DNA of 64,000 nucleotides, taken from assembly GCA_021613535.1 (NCBI GenBank), contig CP075492.1, positions 13,888,001 to 13,952,000 on the forward strand, read 5' to 3'. The DNA is from Adineta vaga. Its lineage: Eukaryota; Animalia; Rotifera. The notes under the pieces are model-generated. The model had not been told where the DNA came from, made no database searches, and saw nothing but the letters and a program-made list of their open reading frames with translations. A program made the translations under genes and the position numbers. Within the stretch, counting starts at the first letter, position 1, and every line of letters starts with the position of its first letter. Shown in pieces: positions 943 to 22,000 of this stretch.

Positions 943-3015
943 TTACGTATGTTCTTCCGAAGTTAAATGTTCAATTAATTTATATAATCTATTTTCATCA
1001 TGAATCTCCATTTCTTCCCAATATTCACATGCACTATCTTCTAAATACGTCAGTGTTTCTGCATCATATTGATCCAATGCAACCGCTTTTTCAAAACAGA
1101 CTTGCCAACGATGATAATGTCTATCATTCATCAAAGTAGTCATTTGTTTATCTACATTATGTTGTTGACTGTCAAGAAGAAATTTGATCACAACATCAGA
1201 ATACGATGCATAACTTGCAATATCCCAATGAATATCAGCAGGCAAAGGATCTTGAATGTAATCACCTGTGCCTAATGAAAGTACACATATATGTTCTCTA
1301 TCATAGCCATATTCGAGAGCTTTTTCATACGCAGCCATTGTTGGATTATTCACTTGTACACCACCATCAGTATAGCATATACCATCGAAATTATGTGGCT
1401 TAAAATATGTTGGTGCAGCTGTTGTTGCCATGAGAACATCTACTATAGATGTTGACTTGTAGTTGTAATTTCTAGTAAATAAATGCGTATAAGTATCACC
1501 AAGTCGAACAGCGGGTATAACAATATCTGTTAAACAATCACGTAATAATGTCTGACGAAAATACTTTTCAAACAATGTTTGTTTACCAGTTGAGGAATAC
1601 TTCGTCGCTAATGATGGTGAAAAGTTGCGATAGCTAAATCTGTGACGATTCTTCTTAAAAAATATATGTTCACCATGTGTTTTATAGATTTCAACTAATT
1701 TTAAAGCATTAATATCAGGCTCCGTTAAACTACCCGCTTTAGGTAAAGATAAACCAGCAGCAATAATAGCACCTGTAGATGTCCCAGCCATCATTTGAAA
1801 CATCGATGAGCACGATCGATTAGTTCGATGTTCTAATTTCGATAACCAAATTGCAGGTATTATTCCACGGATACCACCACCATCGATAGATAATATATTG
1901 TATGATCTGTAATCCTTTTTATAGTTTCCACATTCAAAATGCTGTACTATCGTATCATTTGAGTTGCTTTGACCAATTAGTTTATTAATTATTAGTTGTT
2001 CTTTCTTAACTTCATCATTCTCTGGATCTGCAGCGATTGCAAACAAAATGCTTCTTTGAGCAGCAATATATCTTCTATCTTGTCTTTGATTTGTTTGTAG
2101 ATTAATAGATGATGGCCGATATTTACGTTGTGCAATAGCATATAAATACCAAAATTCAGCAATTTTTTTCTCATTCAATTTTTTTATTTTATTTTTCAAA
2201 TTTGTTAACACTTCATTTGCTTGACTGTATTTACTCAATTTAATCAAACATCGGGAATAGAGTAATGAATTATATAGATCAAGTTCATCAAATGATCTCA
2301 GCTTCATAAGACGTTTATAAACTCGATGTACAGTTTTCCATTTTGATAAAGAAAGTAAATGTTGATGAAATGATACACATTCGGTTTCTTTTACACATTT
2401 TAAAATCAATATACTATATAAGATTATTTTATGTTCAATATCAGCATCTTTTTGTAACGATAATTTCTTTTTAATAAGATTAATATAATTATCATCAGTG
2501 ATGAATATATCAACGATCGTTCGAGTTGATTGGTCATATGTATAGTAAATCGTCTTGAATAAATTATGATTTCGGTTCATAGGTTTGAGAACATGACCAT
2601 GCGGATAATGTTCTTCGATATAACATTGTTGAAAAGTGACTTCATTTTCTCCAATTAAATATGGTAAGTATTGAGTAAACGTTGTGTATTCTTCATCATG
2701 CAACCAGCTGTATATATCCTCACTGATAGTTCTATTGATTTGGTTATTACAAATAATATCTTGAAACTTGCGTCCTGATTCATTTTTATCTCTGGTTAAA
2801 GTATACTGAAACCAATCATTTACATTTTCAAAATCACATTGTACATTAAAATCATATCTGCACACACGTGTACAACTTGTAATTATATTGGTTCTTAACA
2901 ACATTTTTTTAATGAGATAAGGACTCACTGTAATGCTAGCAGTCTCGTTAACTGCCAATCTATTCGCAGATTGTATAACTTCATTTACGTTCGAGTCTTG
3001 ATAACCTTTTGCCAT
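943..3015 (-). CDS. Patatin-like phospholipase with N-terminal helical/TPR-like region (~690 aa, no intron seen)
   Basis: Oxyanion loop SIDGGGIRG, nucleophile GTSTG, AAPTYF and catalytic DGG are all intact. TPR-like helices (LYSRCLIKLSKYSQANEVL; AEFWYLYAIAQRK; AIAADPENDEV) lie upstream. First ATG is 3015; the ORF track began at TTG 3039. Confidence 0.9.
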   Translation of the reverse strand: MAKGYQDSNVNEVIQSANRLAVNETASITVSPYLIKKMLLRTNIITSCTRVCRYDFNVQCDFENVNDWFQYTLTRDKNESGRKFQDIICNNQINRTISEDIYSWLHDEEYTTFTQYLPYLIGENEVTFQQCYIEEHYPHGHVLKPMNRNHNLFKTIYYTYDQSTRTIVDIFITDDNYINLIKKKLSLQKDADIEHKIILYSILILKCVKETECVSFHQHLLSLSKWKTVHRVYKRLMKLRSFDELDLYNSLLYSRCLIKLSKYSQANEVLTNLKNKIKKLNEKKIAEFWYLYAIAQRKYRPSSINLQTNQRQDRRYIAAQRSILFAIAADPENDEVKKEQLIINKLIGQSNSNDTIVQHFECGNYKKDYRSYNILSIDGGGIRGIIPAIWLSKLEHRTNRSCSSMFQMMAGTSTGAIIAAGLSLPKAGSLTEPDINALKLVEIYKTHGEHIFFKKNRHRFSYRNFSPSLATKYSSTGKQTLFEKYFRQTLLRDCLTDIVIPAVRLGDTYTHLFTRNYNYKSTSIVDVLMATTAAPTYFKPHNFDGICYTDGGVQVNNPTMAAYEKALEYGYDREHICVLSLGTGDYIQDPLPADIHWDIASYASYSDVVIKFLLDSQQHNVDKQMTTLMNDRHYHRWQVCFEKAVALDQYDAETLTYLEDSACEYWEEMEIHDENRLYKLIEHLTSEEHT

Positions 3016-3172
3016 GAAAGAGTTCTTAAAAAAAGACAAAAAATCTTACAAAAAAATGCGTCTATACCGTCATAATAGCTAATGCATATTTGTCAGCGTT
3101 CGTTTTTTTTTTTCGTTTCTTATCATCATTAGAGTCTTTTCAGTAATACGTTAGCCGAATCTGTACAAAAAT

Positions 3173-4037: not shown

Positions 4038-5629
4038 TCACAAATGGAATGAAAATTGACAAAAAATCAAACTGAAAACTATGAAAACATTAAAAGAAAT
4101 AATTCTTGTAGCTTGAGAAGTAGTTAAATTTTGTTTTGGTAATAATTCGTAGACATAGAGCAAGCGAGTAACTTCTCGTCGTGCGGTAATTAAAGCACCA
4201 TGTGAATAACCATAGTTGTCTGTACTTGTCGCTTCACCAGCAAATAGCAAACGACTTTGAATTGGTTCGGACAAACGAAAAGGATCTTCATAGCTTTGAT
4301 TGATTGAAATGTATGCATATGAACCATGAGAAAATGGATCAGCATTCCAATTACTCATATAAATTTCCGTCGGTGAAGGGATAACAATATGCGGAAACAT
4401 TGCTTGTAAACTTGTTTGAATTTCTTTGACTATTTCATTTCGATTTTGTTGCCATATTGATAAAGAAATTGAATTACCAGCAATAGTACACAATAAGACT
4501 TGGTACACCATTCCATTTGTTTGCACTAGCCCAAAATCTTAATTCACTTGAATTAATTGATGGTGGTCGAAAGAAATAAAAATTAGTAGTATTCCACCAA
4601 GGTTGATCCCATAATAAATAGATTTTTTCATAATGACCAAATCCTATTCGATCAATCGCATTCAATTTCCATTGCGGAAGTGTTGGATAAAACTCAATTC
4701 CTTTGGATTTTAACACTCCTAGCGGAACTGTTAGTAGAACATAATCTGCTCGATATATTTGTCCATCTTCAGTGAAAACATGAACAATATTATCAGTATA
4801 ATTTATTTTTGTTACGATTTGATTTAAACGAATATCTTTGAGATCTTTTGCTAAACGATCAGTAATTGCCATATAACCTGCATCACAGATAACAGGTTCT
4901 TCACCATAATTTACAGAAGTAAGATCTAAATAACCTTTTGCACCAATAGCTTCTAATTCTGCTCCTTCTCTATCGGCAATTGTAAAATAAGCAAAGTAAT
5001 ACAGTGCATCATGTTGTTCTGAAGAAAGATTTCTTTGTTGAGCAAATAAATTAACGTAATATGCAAATGAAACATTTGATGATGCTGATCTTGTTTGTTC
5101 GCGTACAAAGGCAGAATATTCAACATACCAATGCTGGAGAGTAAGAAGAAAAATACTATCAGTCGATGGACCCAATCCAAGAAAATCATGTTGTCCTGTA
5201 GTACACGTAGGAATATTCACTTCTCGAATGTAGTCCCATATTGGATTCGTTAATTGACCAGATGGAATTGAACCGCGAAGTCCATGAATAAAGCGTGCTC
5301 CCATATCAAGCATCAGACCATTTTTCGATCGAATAGAATGGACTCGACCACCTGTTCGATTTCGTGCTTCTAAAACGATCGTTTGAATTCCATTCTGTTC
5401 TAATAGACGAGTTGCTTCTAAGCCGGCTATACCAGCACCAATGATTAATACCTTCGTTGACATTGTAGTTGATGTCTCTGATGACTGTTTAACCTAATTT
5501 AACACAAATAAACAGAAACAAGGTTAATCAGTGTGATTATGACTGCGTATCTATGTTTACTTCAGAATGAAGCTGTTCAGTATAACCGTAAGCGTATGCA
5601 CAAAAGAAGAATAACTGTAGAATTAACAT
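4038..5629 (-). CDS. Secreted, probably membrane/GPI-anchored flavin-dependent amine oxidase (polyamine oxidase/LAAO-like); one frameshift near 4497
   Basis: Signal exon 5629-5561 (MLILQLFFFCAYAYG...), intron 5560-5494, spliced in frame to KVLIIGAGIAGL..LEARNRTGGRV..DMGARFIHG. C-terminal W..DPFSHGSY and LFAGEAT..HGALITA motifs, then a hydrophobic tail. The two ORFs join with a small shift at ...NGVPS/LLCTIAG. Confidence 0.85.
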
Positions 5630-6321
5630 AGTGTTGTCGAGATTTTAACAAATGATATCTAAATAGACTTAAAGTTCAAAAAGTATACTACGATGTAATA
5701 TTGTGTCGATTGGTATGTATATGTCAGGTAGAATGATTTGATCTTTCTCGACGAAGGAAAGAAAAGAAGAAGAAGAAGAGAAAATTTATGTGTATTTTTA
5801 TCACCAATGATTTATAACGCTTCGTTGCTCTTGTAGAGAAAAAAGCCGACGGATAAGTGTATAAGAAAAGCAGAATATGTATTGTACAAGTTCTATTTGT
5901 TTTTTTTTGTGTTATCGCAGAAGTTTGGAAAGCTTACAACAAGAGCATGTTATTTTTATTTTTATCATGCATAATGAAAAAACAGTAAAAGAGCATAAAT
6001 TATTCTTTGTTGCAGTTTTATGACTCTCCCTCATATAAATCAAGTCGAGGGAGAATAAGAATATTTTACAAACAAATCATTTGATGTATAGGCTATCTGG
6101 CATCCTACTCCTCCTCTTTTTCATCTTTTCTTTGATTTTATTCTAAATGTTTTGGTTGACATTACACTACTTCGCATTTGTTACAGACTTATATTAGATG
6201 ATGTTTAAGTTTTTGCGAAAAAAGGGAAAAAATACGTCAAGAAAAAATTTTCCCCAAAAAAAAGAGGAAAAGAGGAAGAAGGAAGGCAATGTACAGGCAA
6301 AAAATAATGAATCAATTGTTT

Positions 6322-7299
6322 GAGAGAGATGAATGTGGATGCCGGTATCATGTTTGTATGCACACTCTCACCTACATCCGCAATACGGTCGGTAGTAATT
6401 TATATTTGTATATTCCAACTTGTTGGAAAAAAATGTGTTCTTTTGATATATTGATAGACATACTAGTCATACTTTGATGACTCAACTTGAATTCAATTTG
6501 AATTTTTCTACTCGTGAAAAAGTAGTCTTCGATCCTATTCGCTTGACTGTCAGGGTAGGGAAAGATATGCTACGTGCATAATTTGGAGCGTTATAATAAG
6601 TCTTATTTTTCAACACACAGTTAGATCTCTTTATCGCACTATAGTCAAATATAGTATTCATGATAAAGTCTATTCTATTCTGTTATTGGCATTTCATTAT
6701 TTCTTAGATTTTCTCTATGATTTTAATTTTATTGACAACTGTTTTTATTCAATCCATAGAAGCTTACAACGGCGCACAAAGTGGCGATATCAATATTGTT
6801 AAGACATTTCTTAGTCAGAATCCATCTTATAAAGATCGACCTTTAATATATGGATATACTTTGTTGTACGTAGCAACTATGAATAATCATCTTGACATCG
6901 TTAAGTATTTAATTGAAGAAGCTAAATGTTTAATCGATGCTCAAAATCAAGATGATGTGTATACAGGGATCGATACAGCTTTGCATGTGGCATGTGTCAA
7001 AGAGCATGCTGATATAGTTCGTTATCTTCTCGGTCACGGTGCAAATTGTTATTTAGAAAATAAGACAAAAGAAACACCAGGAATGATTGCTAGAAATTCG
7101 TCAGTGCAGTACGATATTTTTCGTGATCATCTCGTGCTTGATTATACTAAACAATGTACGAATAGAATTGAGTTACCAACCATGACAATTACAAATGAAT
7201 TATCATCAAAAAATTATGATTTAAGTTCTGTTACACATAACTGTATTTGGGAATATAAACCATTAAATGAACAACATTGGAAATATTTTGATGAAAAGG
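6322..7299 (+). repeat. Partial, internally deleted duplicate of 11472-12943 (upstream region plus ankyrin-coding part)
   Basis: Direct alignment by eye. The upstream block (GCCGGTATCAT...CAACACACAGTTAGATC) is shared, three internal deletions are present, and the ankyrin-coding block is near-identical up to GATGAAAAGG. Confidence 0.95.
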
Positions 7300-7397
7300 G
7301 TGTGGGTGAAGGTGACGGTATAATAACAAGCGAAACACCCTCACTCTCTCAAGATATAAAAATAATTTCGGAATGTTTGAATGTTGTAATAAATTGA
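6717..7397 (+). CDS. Truncated ankyrin-repeat-only paralog (226 aa) of the 11999 gene; may be a pseudogene
   Basis: Ankyrin motifs GYTLLYVATMNNHLDIVKYLIE and DTALHVACVKEHADIVRYLL plus the start of WWE. The tail (GVGEGDG...) is encoded by the hairpin element. Confidence 0.55.
   Translation: MILILLTTVFIQSIEAYNGAQSGDINIVKTFLSQNPSYKDRPLIYGYTLLYVATMNNHLDIVKYLIEEAKCLIDAQNQDDVYTGIDTALHVACVKEHADIVRYLLGHGANCYLENKTKETPGMIARNSSVQYDIFRDHLVLDYTKQCTNRIELPTMTITNELSSKNYDLSSVTHNCIWEYKPLNEQHWKYFDEKGVGEGDGIITSETPSLSQDIKIISECLNVVIN
7298..7353. repeat. TGTGGG hairpin element at the 3' breakpoint of the duplicate
   Basis: GGGTGTGGGTGAAGGTGACGGTAT...CACCCTCACTCTCTCAAG. Confidence 0.7.
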
Positions 7398-7717
7398 TAT
7401 GTACGATTTGTTTTAATTTTTTTTTTTGTTTTTCTATAGATCTTTCTATTTAACATTTGAAATAAATGAGAAAAAAGTATTAGACTTTCCTTTAATAAAT
7501 CATTTCTCTGATTATTACAGATCAATATAATATGATGATAGAAATATTCAACTTGGTTGGCTTGTGCTCTCATATGTGTTTCTTTGTTCAACTGATCTAT
7601 TCGTGTAAAACCAAGCAACGTTGGTAAATGTACATCACCATTAACTGATTAGATTTTCATTACTTATGCATAAGTGGTTAAATTGTACTAATAGGATTTC
7701 GATAAAGAGTCGCCAAT

Positions 7718-7785
7718 AATTGAGGATTTAGTTGCAGAATTTTCGGTATTTGAAATATGATGCCCTCGCACCCTCGTCCTCAATT
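7718..7785. repeat. Degenerate hairpin element of the same family
   Basis: 9-bp terminal inverted repeat AATTGAGGA / TCCTCAATT, internal CGGTAT, and a C-rich arm CCCTCGCACCCTC. Confidence 0.45.
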
Positions 7786-8170
7786 TAGTCTTCAAGTCCT
7801 AACGAAAAGGTGACACAATATCGATTACAAACAGTTAAGATCCTTTGTGAACTAATTTCTGTTCTATATTCTCAAGAATTTATACAAAAAATAACTGTTC
7901 AATTAATAAAAACTGCTTTATATTTATAGAAATTATTTCTTATCTATAGTTTAATTAATTGATGAACACTCTGTTTATTTGAATATTTTATTCGACGTTT
8001 ATTCATTCGTTTCTTCTCATTTTTACATTTTTTCATTTCAATATTTTTCTCCGTCATTTCTCGTTTCGATGCTTTTTCAGTCATTCGACTATACAAACAT
8101 AGGTAATCAATAAAGCAAGAGAATACATAAATGAAAATAGCGATTAAACGAAAGGAAAGAACATACAACG

Positions 8171-9943
8171 ATGAACATGAAATGTTCGGACGTTCAACTA
8201 ACAGATCTACCTGATGAAATACTTCAAATGATCTTTAAAAAATTGACGAATATCGAAGTGCTTTACTCTTTATTGGATGTTAATAAACGACTTCATAGTT
8301 TAGCCAATGATTCTTTTTTTACTGAACATTTAACATTTCTGGTACATTCGGTGAATGGTGTCAAAACTACAATAGATAGTTCAATGCTTGATTGATTTTA
8401 CAGAGAAATCCTACCTAATATTCATTCAAAAATCAAATGGCTTAATCTCGAACCATTATCTATGAGAGACATTTTATCTGCAACTGATTATCCTAATTTA
8501 CATGGACTTACTCTGCTTCATATTGAGCGTGAAACAGATTTATGTTTATTTGCTGGTAAGTTGTTTCAATTATCATCTTAACTCATGAATAAGGACAGAT
8601 CATTGCACATCGACTGTTTTCATAGATTCGTGCGGCATAACTTTCTATATTGTTTTAGATTGTGCATTCAAAAATCTAATTACAAAATTAATCATTACAA
8701 TGAATGAATATGATTCGTCGAAACAAAGATTAGATTTAACTTCTATTGTGTGTGATGAAATTTTTTCTATATTCGTAAACTTAATCTATTTGAAAATTCA
8801 ATCATCTCATGAATGGTATTGTAATACTATTGAACGATTAAGTTTCGACCATTCATCTCCAACATTTGCTTCGTCAACTTTAACAGAATTGTATGTCACT
8901 TTAAGAGATTTTACCGATTTACTTTATTTGCTTGATGGTCGGTTGAATCAACTTCGTACATTACATGTAATGGCTATTTATTTTCTTGTTGATTCATCTG
9001 AGTCCATTAGAAAGGTATAATAATTAATTATATAAAGACAAGATAATTATTTGACATTTTCTCATTCTAGGATGAATTGGTTAATCTAAAGACTTTCTCA
9101 CTAACCAGTAGATCAGTAATATTTCGTTATGAGAAAACACTGGTGCCACTTCTCCATCGAATGACACATCTTGAAAAATTATTCTTGAATGTTTGCATCG
9201 AACGTGAAACTCTTCATGGATCATTTATTGATGGGAATAACTTGAAGAATAATATAGTGAATTATATGCCAAGATTAAATAAATTTGTGTTCAGTATTCA
9301 TTCTAATGTAATTCATTCCAATAGTTTGTTAAACATACCTTCCAATGATGATATTCAACATACATTCAAGGATCTTAAAGATTATCAAGTTGTTTCATAT
9401 ATTCATTATTTTCCTAAAGACAAAATGATTCAATGTCATATCTATTCATCTCCATATTCTATGGATAGTTTATATCGTCTTACCAATAGTTTTCCAGGTG
9501 GATTGCTTGAATCTGTTCACAATGTCTATTTATTTGATGAAAAACCTTTTGAACATGAATTTTTCATTCGAATTGTTCAAGCATTCCCATATCTTAAGAC
9601 ATTATTGATAGAAAATTATTCACCACAAAACTGCAAAGAGTGTTTACAATCCAATGAAAATGATCAAAATTTCGAAATGATCAAATATCCTTATCTTAAT
9701 CTGCTTATTCTTCATGGTTCTCACAAAGATTATTTGGAACAAAATCTAGATAATAACAAAACATGTTTGTTAAATGATATTAATCTTTATGTTCACTATG
9801 GTACTCTTCAAACAGTAACGCACAATTTCATAAGATCTTTGACACGAATCAATTGCGAAAAAATCACATTTATCAATGATATTAGAAAATCTAATATTCC
9901 AGAACATTTTCATGATTATTTTTCTCGTATTGAAACGTTGTAA
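8171..9943 (+). pseudogene. F-box/LRR-like protein (bdelloid-expanded family) with an in-frame TGA at 8393-8395
   Basis: F-box LTDLPDEILQMIFKKL. Coding continues past the stop (SMLD*FYREILPNIHSKIKWLNLE). Introns 8556-8658 and 9015-9070 splice in frame. Family motifs FSIHS, CHIYSSPY and DEKPFEHEFFIRI present. Confidence 0.8.
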
Positions 9944-10020
9944 CTTGTATTGTTCAATTGATGATGAAGATAACATTAGCATCTCAAGGATGTCGCTCAG
10001 AATATCACTGAAGTAAAGTT

Positions 10021-10108
10021 CTGATGGTGTGAATGCGAGTGAATAAGTATGAATATGGGTAGCTTTTTACATATCAGTCTCACCATCACATACACCCACC
10101 GCCTCAAG
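10021..10108. repeat. Degenerate hairpin element of the same family
   Basis: CTGATGGTGTGAATGCGAGTG...CTCACCATCACATACACCCACCGCCTCAAG, with the shared CTCAAG end. Confidence 0.45.
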
Positions 10109-11470
10109 ATGAATTGTTTCCTTCATGGAATCCATAATTAAAGACGCGTTAAAAGTATATTCTGTTTGAACATCATCGACTATATTTACCAACAAAGCAA
10201 TCAAAATAAGTTTTCTCATATGCATGTTTTTCTCCCATTAGAAATGTGCATCATGATGAACAAATGTATTTCTTCTTTTTGCTATTTACTTGTTCGTGAA
10301 AGAAAAATTCGGAACTTTTCTCAGAACGCCTTTTTGTGCTTTTATCGAATCAAAAGTGGGAAATTTTATAAATCGTTGGTGTAGAAGATTATTAATATTC
10401 TGAAATTTATCGTTATTGTCTAATTATACTGTTTATCAAACGGATGCAATTCTAAATTAAATTTTATTAACGAAGATAAAATACTAGAGATCAGAGTGAT
10501 CTGATAGGAAAAGTATTTATTAGATAATTTACTCCAATAATCACATTTATATCTTGCGCATAGAGCTTAATCACAATATTATCAAATCTGCTTCATAGGT
10601 AGTCATTTTCCGTATATAGAGCTCGATTGATTGAGCATCCAATTCTATAGTACAAAATAGTTCGGCTGGAAACAGCGTATCCATCAAATAAATTACAACA
10701 ATACAATCTACAGATACTGGCAGTCAGTACAAAAGACAATCAGTTATATTTGTAACAGTTCATATTCTCCTTCTCAAAAGAATATGATCATTATTTTTAT
10801 TCATAAGCATCGAAATAGTTTAACTCACAAACACATGAATCTTTCTTAATTAAAATGAATTTATTGAATACAGAGCAATACAAATTATTTTTGTCTTTTC
10901 ATACAGAAGATTTCAACATCACGATGAAATATTGTCAAATATTTGTTTTGTCAATAAGTGGAAATTTTTGTTGCATAGCAGTCGGTAAAATTAACGGTAA
11001 TTTCCAACTTTATTATTGTTTATATAATGAGTACAGCAAAAATAATAAATGTGTTAAGAAATTTTCGTTCGTATTTTGTTAAATATTGAAACAAACAACA
11101 CATTTTTACAGTTATAAATGTGACGAGAATGTATTTCGATTAGCTAAAAGCTTTTCTCTTCAACTGAAAACTGTTGGAAATTATCCACGTTTAGTTACTC
11201 ACCATTATTTCGTAAAGTTTTATAATATATTAAAAAATAAGGTTCACTAGACGTTACATCGAATTTTTCATTCTTGCTCTGTTTTCACAGTATAATGATC
11301 ATACGCTGGACTACTAACTTCATTTTGTGTAGAAAGTTGATCTCCAATTTCAAGTAGGTCACAGGTTATCGATTATGACTGGAATCTCAAAATAGACCAG
11401 AAATTTTTAAGACAGACATGTAATTCCAACTTTGGCTGGGCAAAATTAGGATTCGAAAATAGGTTAGAAC

Positions 11471-11535
11471 TTGAAAGAGTGTGGGTGAAGGTGCCGGTAT
11501 CATATTTATATGCACACTCTCACCTGCAACCTCAA
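11471..11535. repeat. TGTGGG hairpin element at the start of the duplicated source segment (degenerate copy at 6322-6383)
   Basis: TTGAAAGAGTGTGGGTGAAGGTGCCGGTAT...CACACTCTCACCTGCAACCTCAA. The left arm nearly matches the 7298 copy. Confidence 0.7.
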
Positions 11536-11998
11536 TACGGTCAGTAGTGATTTATGTTTCTGTATTCCAACTTGTTGGAAAAAAATGTGTTCTTTTGATA
11601 TATTGATAGACATACTAGTCATACCTTGATGAGTCAACTTGAATTTAATTTGAATTTTTCTACTCGGGAAAAAATAATCTTCGATCCTATTTGCTTGTCT
11701 GTCAGGGTAGGGAAAGATATGCTACGTGCATAATTTCGAGCGTTATAATAGGTTTTATTTTTCAACACACAGTTAGATCGTTAGAAAAGTAGATAAATAT
11801 GCTCTTATCATAGTTTGACAAACATCATTTTTGTCTCTAAACTGTCTTTGATATTGTTCTTTATCGCACTTTAGTCAAATATACTATTCTATTATTTACG
11901 ACCAAAACCTGTCCAACTTGGTAAGGAATCTTTATATATTGATCATGTTACTTAAAAGTAATAGAAATAAAGCTTGCAGAGTTTTTTTTCTATTGTAG

Positions 11999-14900
11999 AT
12001 GATGAATTCCACATCATTTTCTGATGAGCTTATAAAAGCTTGTAAAACAATATCAACTCTTATTCATTCAAATATGGATAAGATAAAAGAATTAACGAAG
12101 GATGTTGACAATGAACAAGAATCAATCAATGAATCAACTTTGGCAAAGGTTATTAATTCAGAAGAGTTTTGTTTATTCGCACCATCCGATGAAGTCAACG
12201 CATTATTCATACAGACTGCAAAAGACATAGAAAATATCATCCATCAATTAAAGTATATGCCCAATCACGAGGAGATGACATATCATTATCTCTTAGATTT
12301 CCTTTATGATTTTAATTTTATTGACAATTGTTTTACTCAAACATTCACCATGGATGTTCTTTCGACATTTGAACAAAAAGTAACTGTTTTTATTCAATCT
12401 ATAGAGGCTTACAACGGCGCACAGAGTGGTGATATCAATATTGTTAAAACATTTCTTAGTCAGAATCCATCTTATAAAGATCGACCTTTAATATATGGAT
12501 ATACTTTGTTGTACGTAGCAACTATGAATAATCATCTTGATATCGTTAAGTATTTAATTGAAGAAGCTAAATGTTTAATCGATGCTCAAAATCAAGATGA
12601 TGTGTATACAGGGATCGATACAGCTTTGCATGTGGCATGTGTCAAAGAACATGCTGATATAGTTCGTTATCTTCTCAGTCACGGTGCAAATTGTTATTTA
12701 GAAAATAAGACAAAAGAAACACCAGGAATGATTGCTAGAAATTCGTCAGTGCTGTATGATATTTTTCGTGATCATCTCGAGCTTGATTATACTAAACAAT
12801 GTACGAATAGAATTGAGTTACCAACAATGACAATTACAAATGAATTATCATCAAAAAATTATGATTTAAGTTCTGTTACACATAACTGTATTTGGGAATA
12901 TAAACCATTAAATGAACAACATTGGAAATATTTTGATGAAAAGGAATCTGCTAAATTAAATTCAGCACTACGTCATGAAACCAATATAACTATTAAAATA
13001 GATATTCAAGAACAAACATATCCTATGTCAATGATGACATTTCTTATAGAAGATGTTACTCAGAAATCAAAACGAAATGCGAAATGGATTCGATGTCGTG
13101 GATCAAATCTATATAATTTCGATGTTGTATGTCTTTGGCAAATGATGCTTACCATTCATCCTTCTGTCACTGAGCCCTCACATAAAGAAGCGCAATCAAA
13201 ACCAATCGATATACCAGCATTGTTCAATTCCGATCAATTAAAATATCGTCTGAATTCATGGTATAAAGCAGATGAACTCACTAGTAGATCCTTCGATGAA
13301 GCAATTAATCAACGTCTCCGATACCTCACGATTGATACACATCTATTTGGAAAAATTAAAGTCAATTTGGAATTATTTTCTTTCAATAATGAAAATGAAA
13401 CAATTCAAGGATATATTCGATGGATACCAAAATTTGCTTATATTGATCTGAGGACAAAACATATCACACTGGTCGATAATTTTCAAGTATTTGATCTTCA
13501 GAAGAACCCACCGATACCTTTACTTAGTAAAGTACTTCGAAACTTTGCGTCGATACCCGACGAAAATACTGATTCAAATGAAACGAACAATGAAACTCTC
13601 GCTGATAATGATCCTATGTGTGATGTTCCAGATCGTTACATTGATAATGTTACAGAAGATGGAGATGACGAGATTGACGATAGATCAACATCAATTACAT
13701 TACCTACAATAGATATCGAACAGAACGATGAAGCTGGTGAAGAAACGACTTTCGACGAAGAAAACTCAAATGATTCATCTGTACTAGAAAATCTTCAAAA
13801 CAGTATTCGACAAAACAATGTTCAGTTGGATCGTGAGCGTGCTGTGATAAATCAACTTCAGCAAAGCATTGATCGAGAGCAGGTTCTTTTAAAAGATCTT
13901 GAAAAGAAGAAAAAAGATATTGATCAAAAAGAATCATTAATTCGACAGTTATGTGATAATTTATCAAATCCACTAGTATCAGAAGAACTCCTAGAACTAC
14001 AAAAAGAATATGCCAAGCAAGAGAATATTTTGAATTTCAAAAAAGAAGAAATTAATCAAATTAAACAACGTTATCAGAAACTTGAAGAGAATCTTACAAA
14101 TGCACAGAATAGACTTCGACAATTTGAGAATTGTCGTGAAGCTGAAATTAAAGCTGAAAAAGATTTGATCAAGATGACATACAACATTCCTGGTACTGAA
14201 TATCTTCAATTACAATCAACGATGGTTGAAATTCATTTGAAAACATTATGTTTTCCAGCTAAATCAGCGATACATGTAAACAATATTCGAATTCATTCAG
14301 AAATCCATGAAACAATCGATCATTACCGTATCTGGACTTTAGAAGCTTATCCTATTCATCATAAATTTATGAATGGTATTTGTTTTCGAATTGAACAATT
14401 TATTAAACAAATAGTAAAAGAAAAGAATTCTTATCGATATAAACTAATCTCCAATATTCGTTCATTTATGCAGAGAATTCCGAATGTTAAATTGCAATGT
14501 AGTACAAAGAATTGGAAACTATTTTTAGAAAGCTTTCAAACTTTAATCAATACAACTCGAGACGCATCTTGTCAACAATTTCATGCTTTCATAGGCAAAA
14601 TTGCGAAAACTTTTCTTAATGATATGGTTCAAAATGACCCCAGTTGGCGGAAGAAATTGTCAACAGAAACGAATAAATATCTAGTAGACCATGATTTTAT
14701 GAAATCAATCGAAGACTTAAAACTCAAAGCTTTTCAGGAATTTATTAAAAAAATTAAAGAAAGAGTTACACACAACAATAAATATGTAAAAAATTCTATC
14801 GATATTCTAGGTTATATTTCTTGATTATTAAACAAAGATAACGTTCCTTTTTCTTAATTGTAGACGAACATTTACATCGGTTACAAAATGTACTGGAATA

Positions 14901-17900
14901 TGAAAAATTCTACTCTGGTCACCAACCTCATCATTTTATGGCATTATCGTCTTTAATTCATCGAATTCATCTTATCTTCCAATGTTTTCAATTAAAATTA
15001 CCTTTATTTGAATCATCTGTCGGATTATTACAGAAAATACGTGAAAACATAGTGGTTGCCATTTCTACTGCTACGGGATCAGGTAAATCAACTCTTGTTC
15101 CACCGTTACTTATCGCTGATGGTTTTGATAAAATATTTATTACACAACCACGCCGATTACCATGTACTTTGTTATCCAAACGAGTCAATTCTAGTATGGA
15201 TAGCAATGATTTAAGTGGCTGGGCCGTCGCTGGTGCTCGTTCGAAGAACGTTGCACGTGCGCCTATTCTCTATTTAACTGATGGATTACTTAAAGAATAC
15301 ATTCTATATCGCGAACGCTTTCTGATCAATCAAGCAAAGATAAGCAGATCTGGACTTGTATTTTTTATTGATGAAGTTCACGAACGGTCAATTAATATCG
15401 ATCTTTGTCTTGCATTAATAGCTCGATTTCTTGAAAAGAATCCGTCTATTTATGCAAAAGTGAGAGTAATCATTTCTTCAGCCACCCTCGATCCATCCAT
15501 TGGGCGAATCTTTCGTCCATTCGGATTGAACGAAATGAATTTAAAAATATCCATTCTTCATCCGGTTACTGTCAAACCGGTTTGTACAGAAAATATTATT
15601 GAATTAATTGGTCGATTGAATGAACAGCTCGAATCAGATGATCAAATACTTTGTTTCGTTAAATCAACATTGGAAGTAACAGAACTCATCAGATTATTGA
15701 AGGTAGTGAAGAACTTATCAGCTTTCCCGTTAATTCAATCGCAATCATCGAATGAACAACAGAAACTTATTGAAACAAAACACATATTCTTTTCAACAAC
15801 TGTTGCAGAAACATCTTTGACTTTTCGATCACTGAAGTTTGTGATTGATACTGGTCTTATTCATATGCCTATTTATGATCCATCAAATGATACAACTGAA
15901 CTGCAAGAACTGAATGCAGCTGAATCAACAATTAGACAACGACGCGGACGACTTGGGCGAACACGATCCGGTGAATATTATCCATTGTATGTGTTCAATC
16001 CTTCCGAAAAGAAATTCCCTATTCCACAAATATGTCAAACAGAATTAGTACAAGTCGAGTTTTCTCTTCGTCGATCACCATTAACATGTGGATTAGATCA
16101 TTTGAAAAAATGGTTGCCAAATCCACCTAATAATGAAGCTATTGATGCCGCAAACAGACGTTTACAACAATTTGATATTCTTGATATAAGCAAAAACTTT
16201 ACACCAACTGGTACATCTATTTCAAACTTACCAGATTTTGGTAGTATAGCAATGAGTAAAGCAGTATTGGCAGGTTTAGAAACATATAACTGTGGTCGCG
16301 ATATCATTCGATTAGCTGCTATTCTAAGTGTACTGAATACGTCATCCCCTCTACGACATATTCCTCAGCTTTATACGAAAGCCGAAGGAGATTTTATGAC
16401 ACTACTTAACGTGATGGATGTTATTGAAGCTGAACGACTTACACAACCACCACATCTTTTCGACGTTGATGAAGTTTGTGAAAGAATTGGTTTGAAAAAA
16501 ATAAGTCATCATATCAGACGTGCAGTTATACGGTACAATGCATTCCAAAAATTTTTTTCTCAACCATCACAATATCAAGCTGCATCTCAGTCGTCTACAA
16601 AGGGTAACTGGGCACCAATCGCTCGTGCGCTTCTAGCCGGTTACTCCGATAATGTCTATCTATCATACGCAGAAATTCAAGGTAAGAAACATCGTTTTAT
16701 TCGTTATACCGTTTCCAATAGTTCATCAAAAAAACAAACTGCTGTTCTTGATAAAGCATCTAAACTTTCACGTCCGCTTGGTGCTCAAACTGTTGCATTA
16801 GTGATTGCTCGTGATATCTTTGTGTCGAAAGATGTACGTGATCGATCAGTTATTTCATTTCTTGGAGAGATTCAACCAGAATGGCTTGATCAAGCTCTTG
16901 TACGTGAAATTGAATTAACAAATGAAGAAATAAAAAACTACAATGAAGAAATCAAGATTAGTCCAGGGTTTCACAGTGTTCTTGGTAATGCTAATTCGAA
17001 TTTACAGGGTGAAAAATTAGTCTTATCTGGACAGGCTAATCATGTACTTGCAACAGAATTACATATTAGAAAGACACTTGTCGTTAAGCATACAACATTA
17101 CTTATAGAGAAAAATGAAACTGATACATCATTAAAACAAAATGTCAAAGATCTTATTGAGTCATTACATATTTTTGATCCAATGAAATGGCGTTGGAAAG
17201 CAGAAAAACAGGTGAAAATAATTTTTCTTACAACCGAAGAGCAAGGTGAAATTATCGTGAAAGCTCGTGATAAAGACTTTAAAAAAGTGCGAAAGGAACT
17301 GAATTCCTTTGTTCGATGGCTTCGGTATTGCAAATCGTTACATTTAGATACTGGTATATATCCTCGTCGGTATATTGATCCTCAAACAAAAAAACCTACA
17401 TCAGATATTGAAAGTCGTATCAAACGCGTGACGGACGACACACTGACTTCAGTTAATCACTGGCAAAGTATTCGAGGTGTAGCAGCCACAAGAGAAACCC
17501 GAATGGAAGTGGTAGCATGGATAGCAATTTGTATTTTTCATTGTAAATTAGAAGGTGGTTTTGTTCGTGACTGGATTGTTGCCAATCAATCAGCGCGACC
17601 TTCTCCATCGATTCTAGTTAAGGAATGGGTACAATTTCAAAATTATATTCCAGCTATTGATAAAGCATTAATTCCATCCGATCTCGATTGTCACTTGCCT
17701 TTAGATCATCCATTTGATATTGATCAATTTCTCGATGAGACTCACAAATATAATATACAAACAGAAGTATATCGACAAGATTGGCGGTATGTCTTACTGT
17801 TTGACCGAGATTATCCTACTGGTCCATTCACAATGGATCTTATTGAACCTCATGTTGCACTTACACAAAATCGGATTGATTTCGATGTAAACAATTTGTA

Positions 17901-18739
17901 CGTGATGCGTGGATTCTGCAATGAATTAGGTCAACGAGTTAATCTTCGTGATCCACCATTTTCTATGGATCTGGAACAAATTGTTGAACAGATCAAAAAG
18001 AGACAGTTTCGTTTATTACGTCCTGTTGGCGATGGTATAGTGGAACAGCGTCTAGAAAAGATGCATACACGTGGTTGGCAAAAAGTTGGCAATGATTTGA
18101 ATTATATTCCACCGCCTCATAAAAATCACAAATTTGTGTTAGATCCACTTCCTCCAACCTATGATCTTTATAAAAAAATAGAAAATGAAATGAAGACAAT
18201 TTCAAACATAACTATCTTGTCTATTGAACAAATTCGTAATCCAACTGTCTATAACACTTATCATACAAAGAAAATATTGATTACTGGTCAATGTTCAAAT
18301 GGAGATCCCAATGAACGTTATTTATTTCACGGTACACATACTGAAAAAGTCGAAAGTATCATGGAAATGGGTTTCGATGAGCGTTATTTCTGTTCCGATG
18401 GTTTGTATGGTAAGTTAAAATGTTTCTATATTTGATACCGTACAACACTTTTCTTAATGTTTGTTTTTGTCTTCAGGTCGTGGAGCTTATTTTGCTGATA
18501 AACCGACGAAATCGCATAAATATACATATCCATCTGCAACAAATCCTGTTCATAAAATGTTTTATAGTCTCGTCACACTTGGACAGATATTTGACAAAGC
18601 AATGTCAGATAGATCTTTGCATTCTGCACCGGAACATCATCATTCTGTGCGTGGTTTAGAAAATCTTGATGAGATTGAATATATTGTCTACAGTAGTGCA
18701 CAAGCTATACCATTTCTGCTCATTACTTACCAAGCATAA
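11999..18739 (+). CDS. Multidomain ankyrin-WWE-coiled coil-DEAH RNA helicase-nucleotidyltransferase-PARP protein (2206 aa)
   Basis: Exons 11999-14810, 14864-18409 and 18477-18739 splice in frame (GT-AG, phase 1). Helicase motifs: TATGSGKST, TQPRR, TDGLL, DEVHER, SAT, STTVAETSLT, QRRGRLGR. NTase: LEGGFVRDW..PSDLD..RIDFDVNNL. PARP: LFHGT, YGRGAYFA, EIEYIVY..QAIPFLLITY. Confidence 0.92.
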
Positions 18740-19010
18740 TAAACACTCGTTCGTTTTGGCATATTAACGAATGAAAAATTATGCCTGCCGTCAATAACAA
18801 TAACTGTTTCAATGTATTGCAAGCTATTGAAAGATATCAAATTAAACAAGAAAAAATGAGAAAAAATTCGCATTCGCTTCAAGAAATAATTAATACTTTA
18901 TTCTTATGTACTGCTGTCGATAAAGAATAAATGAATAAACATACATAAAACTCCAAAATTTAAACGTCTTGATATTCTTCGAAGTCATAGATATGCTTCT
19001 AGCAATAGTA

Positions 19011-22000
19011 TTAGTTCATTCCAATGATGATATCGACAGGATTGTTTGCTGAGTTTATATCATACCAATCGATTGTAACCAAATTGAATGTACTTGACGT
19101 ATGATTTGTTAGAAATTCCTGAAGCATCAAATTCGTTTCCGATCCTAATTTTTTTGGCAACATTGTGGATGTATTTTTGTGAAGATTATCAACTATATTG
19201 TCGAAAATATCTATGATCTGTGGTGTCTGTATCCAACTTATATGGTACATAGATTTCATATTTTTCCTAAGCCCTTGACTTTCGAGTTCTATGAGTTCTG
19301 TAAGACTATTGACACCATTTGAAGCGATCTCCCATCTTCCGGAATCTGCAAATCCTCTAGTATTGATAACTGTATCTTCATAATAGTAATCGTCGGTATG
19401 GTCAGTGTTAAGAACGATGACTTTTGGGGTTGTAATTTGCGAATCATTAGTAGTAATGGAGGAAAGAGTGACATCTTTTAAGTTTTGAAATTCATAAGAC
19501 TTGTGTCCAATAGAATTTTCAGGCATATAAAGGTATGGCTTGAGATGATTTTGAATGATTGCTGTCACTCTCGATGGAAGAGTTTTAGGATCGATACCAA
19601 AGTTAGTATGTGAAATCAAAAGAAAAATTAGCTCACCGGATGTAGAATGAGCGTCGAGAAAATTTCTAATTTGCCGAAGTATATCATTCAATTCAGGACC
19701 ACGAAGTGCATGCTGAATGTAGAAGGATCCATCTACATCATAGTAAACTCGGAAGTCAAAGAATCGTATACCATCATCAAGTTGTTGTCGAATGGTTCGA
19801 TTTTGTGAAATAGATATTCGAAGTGTGGTATCAATGATGTAATCTAATAAGGTACGTCCAACATAGATCTTGTCTTTACTAAACGGTAACTGACCATTCG
19901 CAGGTGCAAAATCAGCACTTAGATTCCATAGAAATTTGATATTTCCATAGGTGATCTGAGAGAGTTTTCGTGTTAACCCATAAGATCCAGAATTGTGAGT
20001 TCCAGGAATTTTTAGCTGCGAAAGTGTCTTTGACTGTATCTTCGGAGTTGACATCCAACGACTGTAGTTAGTTTTTGTTTGTTCGGTTTTTCGAGTTGAA
20101 ACATAAGATGATCTAATCGATATCGATTTCTTGCTAAATACATTTCCGCTCAGAGTTGCGTTAATAAGTTTATTGATAGCCATGTTTAATTTGTCGATGA
20201 GGATGTTGTTGTATTTGACATTGAGTGTACTTGCCAAATGATAGGGTGTATCAATGAGTTTAAACCAGGTAGAGAAAAATGTTTGTATAAGACTAACTAA
20301 ATCTTTGTTGATTTTGAAATTTTCAACCGAGAATGCTAACTTGGTTACTATACAAGAAAATCCGTGAATATCACTGATTTTGACTATAGCTTGTGTCAAC
20401 ATAGACATGCCATCGAGAGTTATATTAAAATTTATATTCATGCTATGGTACACTATGGATCCAGAGATTTTGCCACGAAGATTGAGGATCATATTGATGT
20501 ACCATTGTTCATTGTTTTCATGATATTGAGTCGGTGACAGTGCAGCATACTTGCAGCGGATCGATTGTGGAGTAAGATCGAGTTGTTTAATAATTAATTT
20601 TGTATCCTTATTCAGATCTAAGTGAAGTGGATTGGCAGACACGTATGCGACGATAGCTGGTAGATTAGCAGTGATAAAACTATTGATCAAAGGCGGTAGG
20701 ATATCAGGACCTCCGAAGAAGTAAAATGAGTAATCGATTTCTTGATCGAATGGTTTGATAGGAGCAAGTAATACTCCTGTCTGACCTTCTGATCCGAATA
20801 AATTCGCATTGGTAACATAGTTTCCTTGTCCTACATTTACCTTTATCGTATTGGAGCCGTACGAAATATCAAAAAACGACTGAGACGTTTCAGTACCAGT
20901 ACTAATATACGACACGGGACTGGTTCTACTCGCTTCGATGGTTTGACTAGGGAACGTATGTTTCATATTCATATTTGTCGATGTCGTTAATACCAGCGAT
21001 TGTGAGTAATCATTAGTAATGGTCATAGATGCACGTGAGATTTGCATCATTGCCATTTTCATACTTCTTGTTTGCATATAAGTTTCTATATAGAAAAAAA
21101 GATGAATTTACTGATTTGGATTGGTTTTCTTACCTGGTAAACACGAATGACCATAAAACTCGAATTCGGAATAGTGTACTCCACTCTCAATTCCTCTTTT
21201 CGATACAACCAGGACTCGATAACTTCGATAACGTCGAGTGTTATTCAACATTTGAAGAGAACCTGCCTTGCCTCGACCTGGATCAATATCAAGTCCACTT
21301 GATCCATCATATATCAATGTCCAACTTTTACCTATCGTTAAGGAAGAATTATCAGCATTACTTCCTTCAAGTGTTACTCTGACTGGATCTCGATTTGGCT
21401 GATCAGTTGCAGTGGTAAATCGAAATCCAGTGACAATACAAATACCAACATGAAGTGTCACATAAAAGCCTGTATTTAAGCCACTTCTCAGACTACTGAC
21501 ATTAGCTGAATTTGATCCAAAACTTGTATATTTAGTATAAATATTGCGATCGAAGATAGTGGATTCTATTTCATATGATGGCATTTGTCCTTTTTCATGA
21601 CCTATTGAAGTTGAAAAACTATTTCTTCCTGCTCTGGTACTCCGAATCGATGATATACTGCTATTTAGCGTGTCGATATAATGATCTAGAAGGAAAGTAG
21701 AACACAAGTGTAACTATATACTAGTGGTTTGGAACAGATACATACGAATAGGAATGGCACAATCAAAACCGGTCCAACCTGATTTGCATTTACATATACC
21801 AAATTGAAAGTAAGCACTGTCGACACACGTTCCATGTGCAGTATCTGTGCATTGATTATAACAGTATACTGGATTCGATAAATAGCGATCAACGACAGAT
21901 TTAATCAATATAGCTTTTTTAGAAATATACATATCAGCAGGAAAATATTGATTAGTTAAAAGATCGGCAATGCTAGAGATACCAACTTTCGTAATGACAG

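Follow-up and report, generated by a model that had tools for sequence, protein, structure and literature searches.

A PARP-family protein of the bdelloid rotifer Adineta vaga that joins a DEAH/RHA helicase to an unannotated, probably active nucleotidyltransferase

What might a single polypeptide do that carries a DEAH/RHA helicase, a nucleotidyltransferase and a PARP catalytic domain? The question is raised by a gene of the bdelloid rotifer Adineta vaga, located at 11999-18739 in the 64,000-nucleotide stretch of contig CP075492.1 (contig 3, 13,888,001-13,952,000) analysed here (the window, to which all positions without a contig name refer). A sequence-only reading had proposed that its product recognizes foreign RNA, tails it or makes an oligonucleotide signal, and amplifies the response through ADP-ribosylation that its own WWE domains would read. 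We find a functional gene whose product, judged from its domains and conserved motifs, is a multi-domain PARP-family enzyme with a probably active nucleotidyltransferase domain that has escaped annotation. Searches were run with the exon pieces separately, and whole domains were compared through database homologues.

The earlier interpretation depended on a Pol-beta nucleotidyltransferase fold for the region 17480-18090, and this fold is borne out by a structural model and by several independent libraries. An exhaustive HMMER search of 1.84 billion representatives returned 149 relatives of the domain. In a 41-sequence alignment, G48, F50, R52, D53 and D92 are invariant, G49, D90 and D156 are each kept in 39 of the 41 sequences, as is an acidic residue (D/E) at 142, and D158 is kept in 36. 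The AlphaFold2 model calculated on this alignment (predicted local distance difference test [pLDDT], 94.3; predicted template-modelling score, 0.92) places the glycine pair 48-49 after the strand formed by residues 45-47 and both D90 and D92 on the strand 90-94, thereby combining the fold, the G[GS] turn and the DxD motif on the next strand that characterize the Pol-beta superfamily, with candidates for its third carboxylate in D142, D156 and D158. Against the PDB, the top list returned by Foldseek consists exclusively of Pol-beta nucleotidyltransferases (best E 4e-4), the top matches being class II CCA-adding enzymes, FAM46/TENT5, Cid1 and GLD-2. Stronger matches are obtained in the viral library BFVD (E 6e-8, template-modelling [TM] score of about 0.5) with giant-virus proteins from Fadolivirus, Klosneuvirus, moumouvirus, mimivirus (L685) and pithovirus (PolyA_pol-head proteins), some of them annotated as 'NT pol-beta-like' or 'Poly A polymerase head'. 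Searches of the ESM Atlas, by shape and by features, lead to PolyA_pol, Gad2 and AbiEii clusters, and the phage family phrog_1614 ('nucleotidyltransferase') is matched by 14 of the 41 members (best 1.3e-5). In Pfam, this copy of the domain matches only DUF5769 (E 8e-4), the single Pfam family matched so broadly by the relatives (30/41 members, best E 7e-6). The model and these matches support a Pol-beta nucleotidyltransferase fold that lies nearest the heads of class II CCA-adding enzymes and poly(A) polymerases, outside strict PolyA_pol membership.

The motifs picked out previously, GGFVRD, DLD and DFDVN, are all present, with the correction that the first occupies 17554-17571 and does not begin at 17548. 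Neither motif B (RRDxxxNA) nor motif D (EDxxR) of class II enzymes is recognizable in the domain, in agreement with the earlier remark that an EDxxRRD templating motif is not obvious; we see no RRD or EDxxR. At low confidence, DFDVN more probably corresponds to the FEVTT strand of CCA enzymes than to motif B. Ordinary CCA-adding enzyme genes are found at other loci of the same genome, and because these canonical genes are kept separately, the protein studied here is not the housekeeping enzyme. As an observation on these other loci, two CCA-enzyme-like genes (L014 and L015) adjoin each other at C4:7035195-7037477, L015 being far more diverged, and a third such copy (L013) lies on C1.

Downstream of the nucleotidyltransferase, the PARP catalytic domain is interrupted by the second intron, and its exon-2 and exon-3 pieces were scored apart. 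The exon-3 piece is recognized as a member of the Pfam PARP family (PF00644; E 1.3e-9, 38.4 bits against a cut-off of 26.7). The description 'tankyrase-like' fits the C-terminal half, which is nearest TNKS1/2 (E 4.5e-8) and includes the HHSV and EY(I/V)xY motifs, whereas the N-terminal half is nearer PARP14/15 in the PDB (E 4e-8). The predicted retention of the H-Y-E triad holds: His, Tyr and Glu can all be located, and the Glu of EYIVY aligns with the catalytic Glu of tankyrases (AEYVIY). The triad is conserved in most relatives, including those of an amoeba and a marine protist; its presence in the sequence is not in itself proof of polymer formation.

The helicase likewise proves to be the complete DEAH/RHA enzyme that had been claimed. 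Exon-2 residues 43-524 match Prp43, DHX15, HrpA, Prp16 and DHX8 (E 1e-31 to 1e-24, Prp43-type helicases at 1e-31), Pfam assigns DEAD and Helicase_C to the same exon, motifs I (GSGKST), II (DEVH), III (SAT) and VI (QRRGRLGR) are all intact, and the C-terminal winged helix, ratchet and OB fold of the DEAH/RHA set are present. A structure model of exon-2 residues 530-860, built with 19 relatives (pLDDT 82), resolves into three parts. The domains listed in the earlier reading all hold, but two KH-like modules between the helicase and the nucleotidyltransferase had been overlooked.

The same combination of domains recurs in a family that public annotation calls just 'PARP' or 'hypothetical'. In the A. 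vaga genome (the 100.8-Mb assembly of six contigs), the nucleotidyltransferase domain has at least 12 matches, and at least seven of the loci have, in the same orientation and about 4.5 kb further upstream, a WWE region as well and represent full-length paralogues that are 35-58% identical. Proteins of 1000-2480 residues that align collinearly with exon 2 have the architecture ankyrin-helicase-domain-PARP or helicase-domain-PARP. Their named sources are Rotaria, which supplies the nearest full-length relatives, Didymodactylos, Adineta, the amoeba Stenamoeba, Euglena and an MMETSP transcriptome (marine protist), so that the animals among the named sources are bdelloids only. More than 200 further short relatives from bdelloids or metagenomes contain the nucleotidyltransferase domain, often together with PARP. 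In relatives that are not cut short, PARP almost always follows this domain; a 2140-residue protein from ENA (P0053) has a WW domain, a helicase and the nucleotidyltransferase at its very end, PARP being absent, and a second protein, possibly truncated (P0067), has the helicase and the nucleotidyltransferase domain without PARP. As read from these sequences, the family has a constant core in which an H-Y-E PARP directly follows a class-II-like nucleotidyltransferase. A DEAH/RHA helicase, an OB fold and two KH-like modules usually stand ahead of this core, and bdelloid members open with ankyrin repeats and two WWE modules. One intron-less relative of 1965 residues, with helicase, domain and PARP, occupies 6001-11898 of a 36-kb ENA contig (ERZ21831265; L042) from a protist or a giant virus. 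That contig has a G+C content of about 55% and tightly packed same-strand genes, one of which encodes a WWE module with an Exo_endo_phos nuclease.

Our literature searches found no paper describing this architecture and none on DUF5769, which agrees with the earlier statement that no characterized protein of this kind is known; nor do we recognize an already described housekeeping family here, the CCA-enzyme genes being separate and the architecture undescribed in the literature searched. The DUF5769 hidden Markov model (HMM) found nothing in the A. vaga genome or in control genomes, and scanning viral contigs with the family alignment gave four pattern matches, none of which was confirmed.

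The gene model itself is well defined and agrees with the three exons and 2206 residues first proposed (Table 1). It was built from the open reading frames (ORFs) 11999-14824 and 14938-18435 and the frame 18461-18739, linked via two GT..AG introns, and the exon lengths total 6621 nt, equal to 2206 codons plus the stop. A Rotaria orthologue (P0001) can be aligned from residue 2 of exon 1, an AATAAA at 18738-18743 overlaps the stop codon, and the G+C content around the gene is about 30-38%. Contigs from public runs, which are not recorded as RNA, were compared with 12850-18800. Intron 1 is skipped exactly in one contig of run X9 (14810 joined to 14864), and intron 2 is skipped at its exact borders in contigs of runs X8 and X9. 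Because the assembly contains a single copy of the exon 2/3 region, with its intron, spliced RNA is the simplest source of these contigs. The exons are thus joined in transcript-like contigs, the splice evidence coming from separate contigs, none of which spans the whole gene. A retrocopy as the origin of the joined form is ruled out for this assembly, which has no intron-less copy, and the intact frames, together with the junctions observed in contigs, rule out a pseudogene or mis-joined ORFs.

Table 1. Coordinates of the gene and its predicted features in the window.
Feature	Position	Strand	Remarks
Gene, 3 exons, 2206 aa	11999-18739	+	Frames intact
Exon 1	11999..14810	+	937 codons plus 1 base; ORF and splice donor visible in the sequence; encodes the N-terminal region, ankyrin repeats, both WWE modules, the acidic linker, a coiled-coil-like stretch and a helical region
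Ankyrin repeats	12419..12706	+	Exon-1 residues 141-236; Pfam Ank_2 E 1.2e-15, Ank E 4.8e-14
WWE module 1	12887..13102	+	CIWEYK to WIRCRG; Pfam WWE E 0.04 in this copy
WWE-like module 2	13130..13432	+	CLWQMM to IRWIPK; W/W/R pattern conserved in paralogue alignment
Acidic low-complexity linker	13541 to ~13777	+	Composition
Coiled-coil-like stretch	13778-14173	+	Composition: E/K/Q/L/R = 55-68%, Pro and Gly absent
Intron 1	14811..14863	+	53 nt, GT..AG, phase 1
Exon 2	14864..18409	+	DEAH/RHA helicase, OB fold, two KH-like modules, nucleotidyltransferase, first PARP half
DEAH/RHA helicase (RecA1 + RecA2, winged helix, ratchet, OB fold)	14983..16893	+	GSGKST 15076, DEVH 15370, SAT 15478, QRRGRLGR 15937
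OB fold	16588-16893	+	
Two KH-like modules	16891..17328	+	Exon-2 residues 676-741 and 739-821; conserved GXXG loop absent
Pol-beta-fold nucleotidyltransferase domain, class II type (modelled)	17413..18120	+	GGFVRD 17554-17571, DLD 17680-17688, DFDVN 17878-17892
PARP catalytic domain, N-terminal half	18133..18409	+	PARP14 E 4e-8, PARP15, tankyrase-2; Pfam PARP 25.0 bits
Intron 2	18410..18476	+	67 nt, GT..AG, phase 1; inside PARP catalytic domain
Exon 3	18477..18739	+	Second PARP half with Tyr and Glu of H-Y-E; stop 18737-18739
H-Y-E triad	His 18328-18330, Tyr 18488-18490, Glu 18677-18679	+	LFHGT, GAYFA, EYIVY

Two features of the public contigs deserve mention in their own right. The X8 and X9 contigs show 0-2 differences in exon 2 and 12-14 (about 4%) in exon 3 and the 3' untranslated region (18476-18800), where they also carry a 2-nt insertion; this divergence could reflect an allele, another strain or a chimeric contig. 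At 14045 and 15374, contigs of runs X1, X2 and X9 continue into unrelated sequence, one of them (2243 nt, depth 30) having only 24 nt in common with the gene. Because 15374 falls in the DEVH motif, the assembly has probably joined the gene to other transcripts at these places.

The N-terminal half of the protein largely agrees with its first description. The ankyrin repeats are confirmed by Pfam Ank matches with E values of about 1e-15. Two WWE-like modules are indicated through the paralogues, whereas this copy remains below the Pfam threshold (PF02825; 14.8 bits against a cut-off of 21.1): the family is matched by 8 of 11 aligned paralogue regions (best E 2.3e-12), and in the region of module 2 the paralogues match WWE_5 and WWE_2. 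A search of the PDB with the WWE profile returned no WWE structure and nothing relevant. The stretch after the acidic linker is read as a putative coiled coil from its composition only.

Among the known proteins closest to the rotifer enzyme are two groups of PARPs. The enzyme resembles the vertebrate antiviral PARPs (PARP14, PARP9-DTX3L, PARP12 and ZAP/PARP13) in that KH-like and WWE-like modules precede a PARP domain lacking a helical domain of the PARP1 type, in belonging to a multi-copy diverged family and in the affinity of its N-terminal catalytic half to PARP14/15. However, it keeps the Glu of H-Y-E, the third triad residue being Leu in PARP14/15 and Ile in PARP12, it adds the helicase and the nucleotidyltransferase, and it has no macro or CCCH domains. 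With tankyrases it shares ankyrin repeats and an H-Y-E PARP whose C-terminal half is nearest TNKS1/2, but its repeats number only about three, a SAM domain is missing, and the alignment shows a deletion where tankyrases have their zinc-binding loop. Tankyrase identity is ruled out, one Ank_2 stretch (residues 141-236) standing against five clusters, with the SAM domain missing. Unlike class II CCA-adding enzymes and poly(A) polymerases, the protein lacks an EDxxR templating motif as well as body and tail domains, and it is fused to PARP. The DUF5769, giant-virus 'NT pol-beta-like' and RING proteins provide the sole Pfam family match and the best BFVD structural matches, but the DUF5769 matches lie below the Pfam cut-off and cover part of the profile, the viral proteins have no known PARP or helicase context, and this family too is uncharacterized. 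TENT5/FAM46, the MenT and AbiEii toxins and phage Gad2 do not match the protein significantly in sequence and are set apart by domain context and taxa.

The chemistry best supported by these comparisons is nucleotidyl transfer to RNA 3' ends, because RNA 3'-end enzymes are the structural neighbours of the nucleotidyltransferase, the helicase belongs to the 3'-to-5' kind and active-site-type residues are conserved in all three domains. DEAH/RHA helicases track 3' to 5' on single strands. In the mechanism that we tentatively prefer, and which we hold to be possible rather than probable, the enzyme would couple tailing of RNA 3' ends with ADP-ribosylation and so serve RNA surveillance or defence. 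Single-stranded RNA would be bound by the helicase, OB and KH-like part, and the nucleotidyltransferase would extend the RNA 3' end without a template, marking the RNA, the added tail also offering a single-stranded landing site for the 3'-to-5' DEAH motor. ADP-ribosylation by the PARP domain would target the protein itself, its protein neighbours or the end of the RNA, leaving a mark that the WWE modules would recognize in order to hold or gather copies of the enzyme. The analogy is to TRAMP (Trf4/5 poly(A) polymerase, Air1/2 and Mtr4), in which one RNA is handled jointly by a Pol-beta-fold tailing enzyme, an RNA-binding module and a helicase of 3'-to-5' polarity. It is a functional analogy only: the TRAMP activities are spread over three proteins, the helicase is Ski2-like and not DEAH, the tailing enzyme is class I-type, and ADP-ribosylation plays no part. 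Because the copies are many and diverged and their distribution is patchy, involvement in conflicts with viruses or transposons, or in RNA quality control after stress, is suggested.

Several results weigh against this coupling of tailing to ADP-ribosylation. Sequence searches of the PDB with the nucleotidyltransferase domain, both as a single sequence and as the 41-sequence profile, gave no meaningful match. The PolyA_pol HMM (PF01743) is matched by one of the 41 members (E 0.073) and, at E up to 10, not by this protein, which places it outside the class II family as that model delimits it. In hhalign, bacterial CCA enzymes align GGxVRD with GGFVRDW at E 6.5e-4 but with a probability of 28%, and the alignment with the rotifer's own CCA enzymes (E 0.0025, probability 12%) is a hint for residue equivalence only. 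About 37-40 residues with a beta-hairpin separate GG from DxD, unlike in class II enzymes, where about 10 residues lie between GGxVRD and DxD, and the third carboxylate is narrowed only to D142, D156 or D158. The GXXG loop is unconserved in the KH-like modules of the aligned relatives, and because it is absent, RNA binding by these modules is doubtful. Expression looks low (contig depth 2-5), PADLOC returned no credible defence-family match, and the reported induction of A. vaga PARP genes, taken as a group, in response to radiation and desiccation (PMC10809525) would suit a role in DNA damage no less than one on RNA.

That DNA-damage role is the strongest of the alternatives, which we nevertheless consider unlikely. 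It is favoured by the reported response of many A. vaga 'PARPs' to radiation and desiccation. The helicase would act at breaks, on DNA or on RNA-DNA hybrids, with the nucleotidyltransferase serving as a terminal transferase for DNA ends, and signalling by the PARP domain would recruit repair factors, for example after desiccation. However, Pfam detects no PARP-type zinc finger, WGR, BRCT or PBZ domain in the protein, and the best structural matches of the nucleotidyltransferase are RNA 3'-end enzymes and not DNA polymerases. It is less likely still that the nucleotidyltransferase-like domain is no polymerase but a regulator that binds ATP, NAD+ or ADP-ribose and gates the adjoining PARP. From rotifers to protists, GG, RD, DxD and two or three more acidic residues are near-invariant, a degree of conservation that catalysis, and not mere binding, would predict, and some relatives have the helicase and the domain with no PARP to gate (P0053 and P0067 above).

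That the domain responds to bound RNA by making a diffusible signal, either a nucleotide or a short oligonucleotide, in the manner of OAS, cGAS or CD-NTases and with PARP and WWE as the output, appears improbable. The fold superfamily is common to OAS and cGAS, and the helicase and KH-like front could serve as the sensor, but cGAS appears only at Foldseek rank 42 (TM 0.16), class II heads, which extend RNA primers, match best, and Pfam reveals no evident receptor domain for such a signal. Equally improbable, in our estimate, is a more far-reaching version of the tailing mechanism, in which the adjoining nucleotidyltransferase and PARP would together write a hybrid mark on one nucleic-acid end, read by WWE modules as a tag for foreign or damaged RNA; such a mark might be an RNA end both tailed and ADP-ribosylated, nucleotides added to an ADP-ribose hydroxyl, or NAD-linked RNA used as a PARP substrate. 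If true, this would be a chemically new tag and an innate-immune logic common to bdelloids and several protists and related to giant-virus enzymes. Finally, a merely unannotated housekeeping enzyme of RNA processing (e.g., tRNA or rRNA maturation) would account for the nearest relatives being CCA-adding enzymes and Prp43/DHX15-type helicases, themselves housekeeping factors, but is very improbable given the canonical CCA-enzyme genes elsewhere in the genome, the many paralogues at 35-58% identity, the restriction to bdelloids among the animals in the named sources, and a PARP fusion unlike the housekeeping pattern.

The surroundings of the gene include a partial tandem duplicate of its 5' part at 6340-7397, in which 6340-6627 corresponds to 11492-11779 (93%) and 6737-7036 to 12382-12681 (97%), with about 490 nt lost between them. 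The ORF 6717-7397 (226 aa) shares 93% identity with residues 129-315, which cover the ankyrin repeats and the first half of WWE 1, before the two sequences part; either a truncated pseudogene or a newly arisen short gene would fit. The neighbours, all on the minus strand, are a patatin-like phospholipase (943-3039; E 1.6e-26) and a flavin amine oxidase fragment (4474-5463; E 1.2e-42) upstream and an ORF with a weak PI-PLC-X match (19011-21077; E 0.0014) downstream.

Each domain of the protein is familiar, yet our searches turned up no described protein in which a DEAH helicase, a nucleotidyltransferase of the primer-extending type and an H-Y-E PARP are combined, and the nucleotidyltransferase represents an uncharacterized family overlooked by public annotation. 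Its structural tie to giant-virus proteins raises the question of virus-host gene exchange. If the three activities are indeed coupled on RNA, 3'-end tailing and ADP-ribosylation would be combined in one enzyme, and the PARP theme in nucleic-acid immunity would be widened to invertebrates and protists. For bdelloids themselves, papers accounting for radiation and desiccation resistance treat all PARP-domain genes as base-excision repair factors; a sizeable share of this 'PARP expansion' may instead be the RNA-directed family proposed here.

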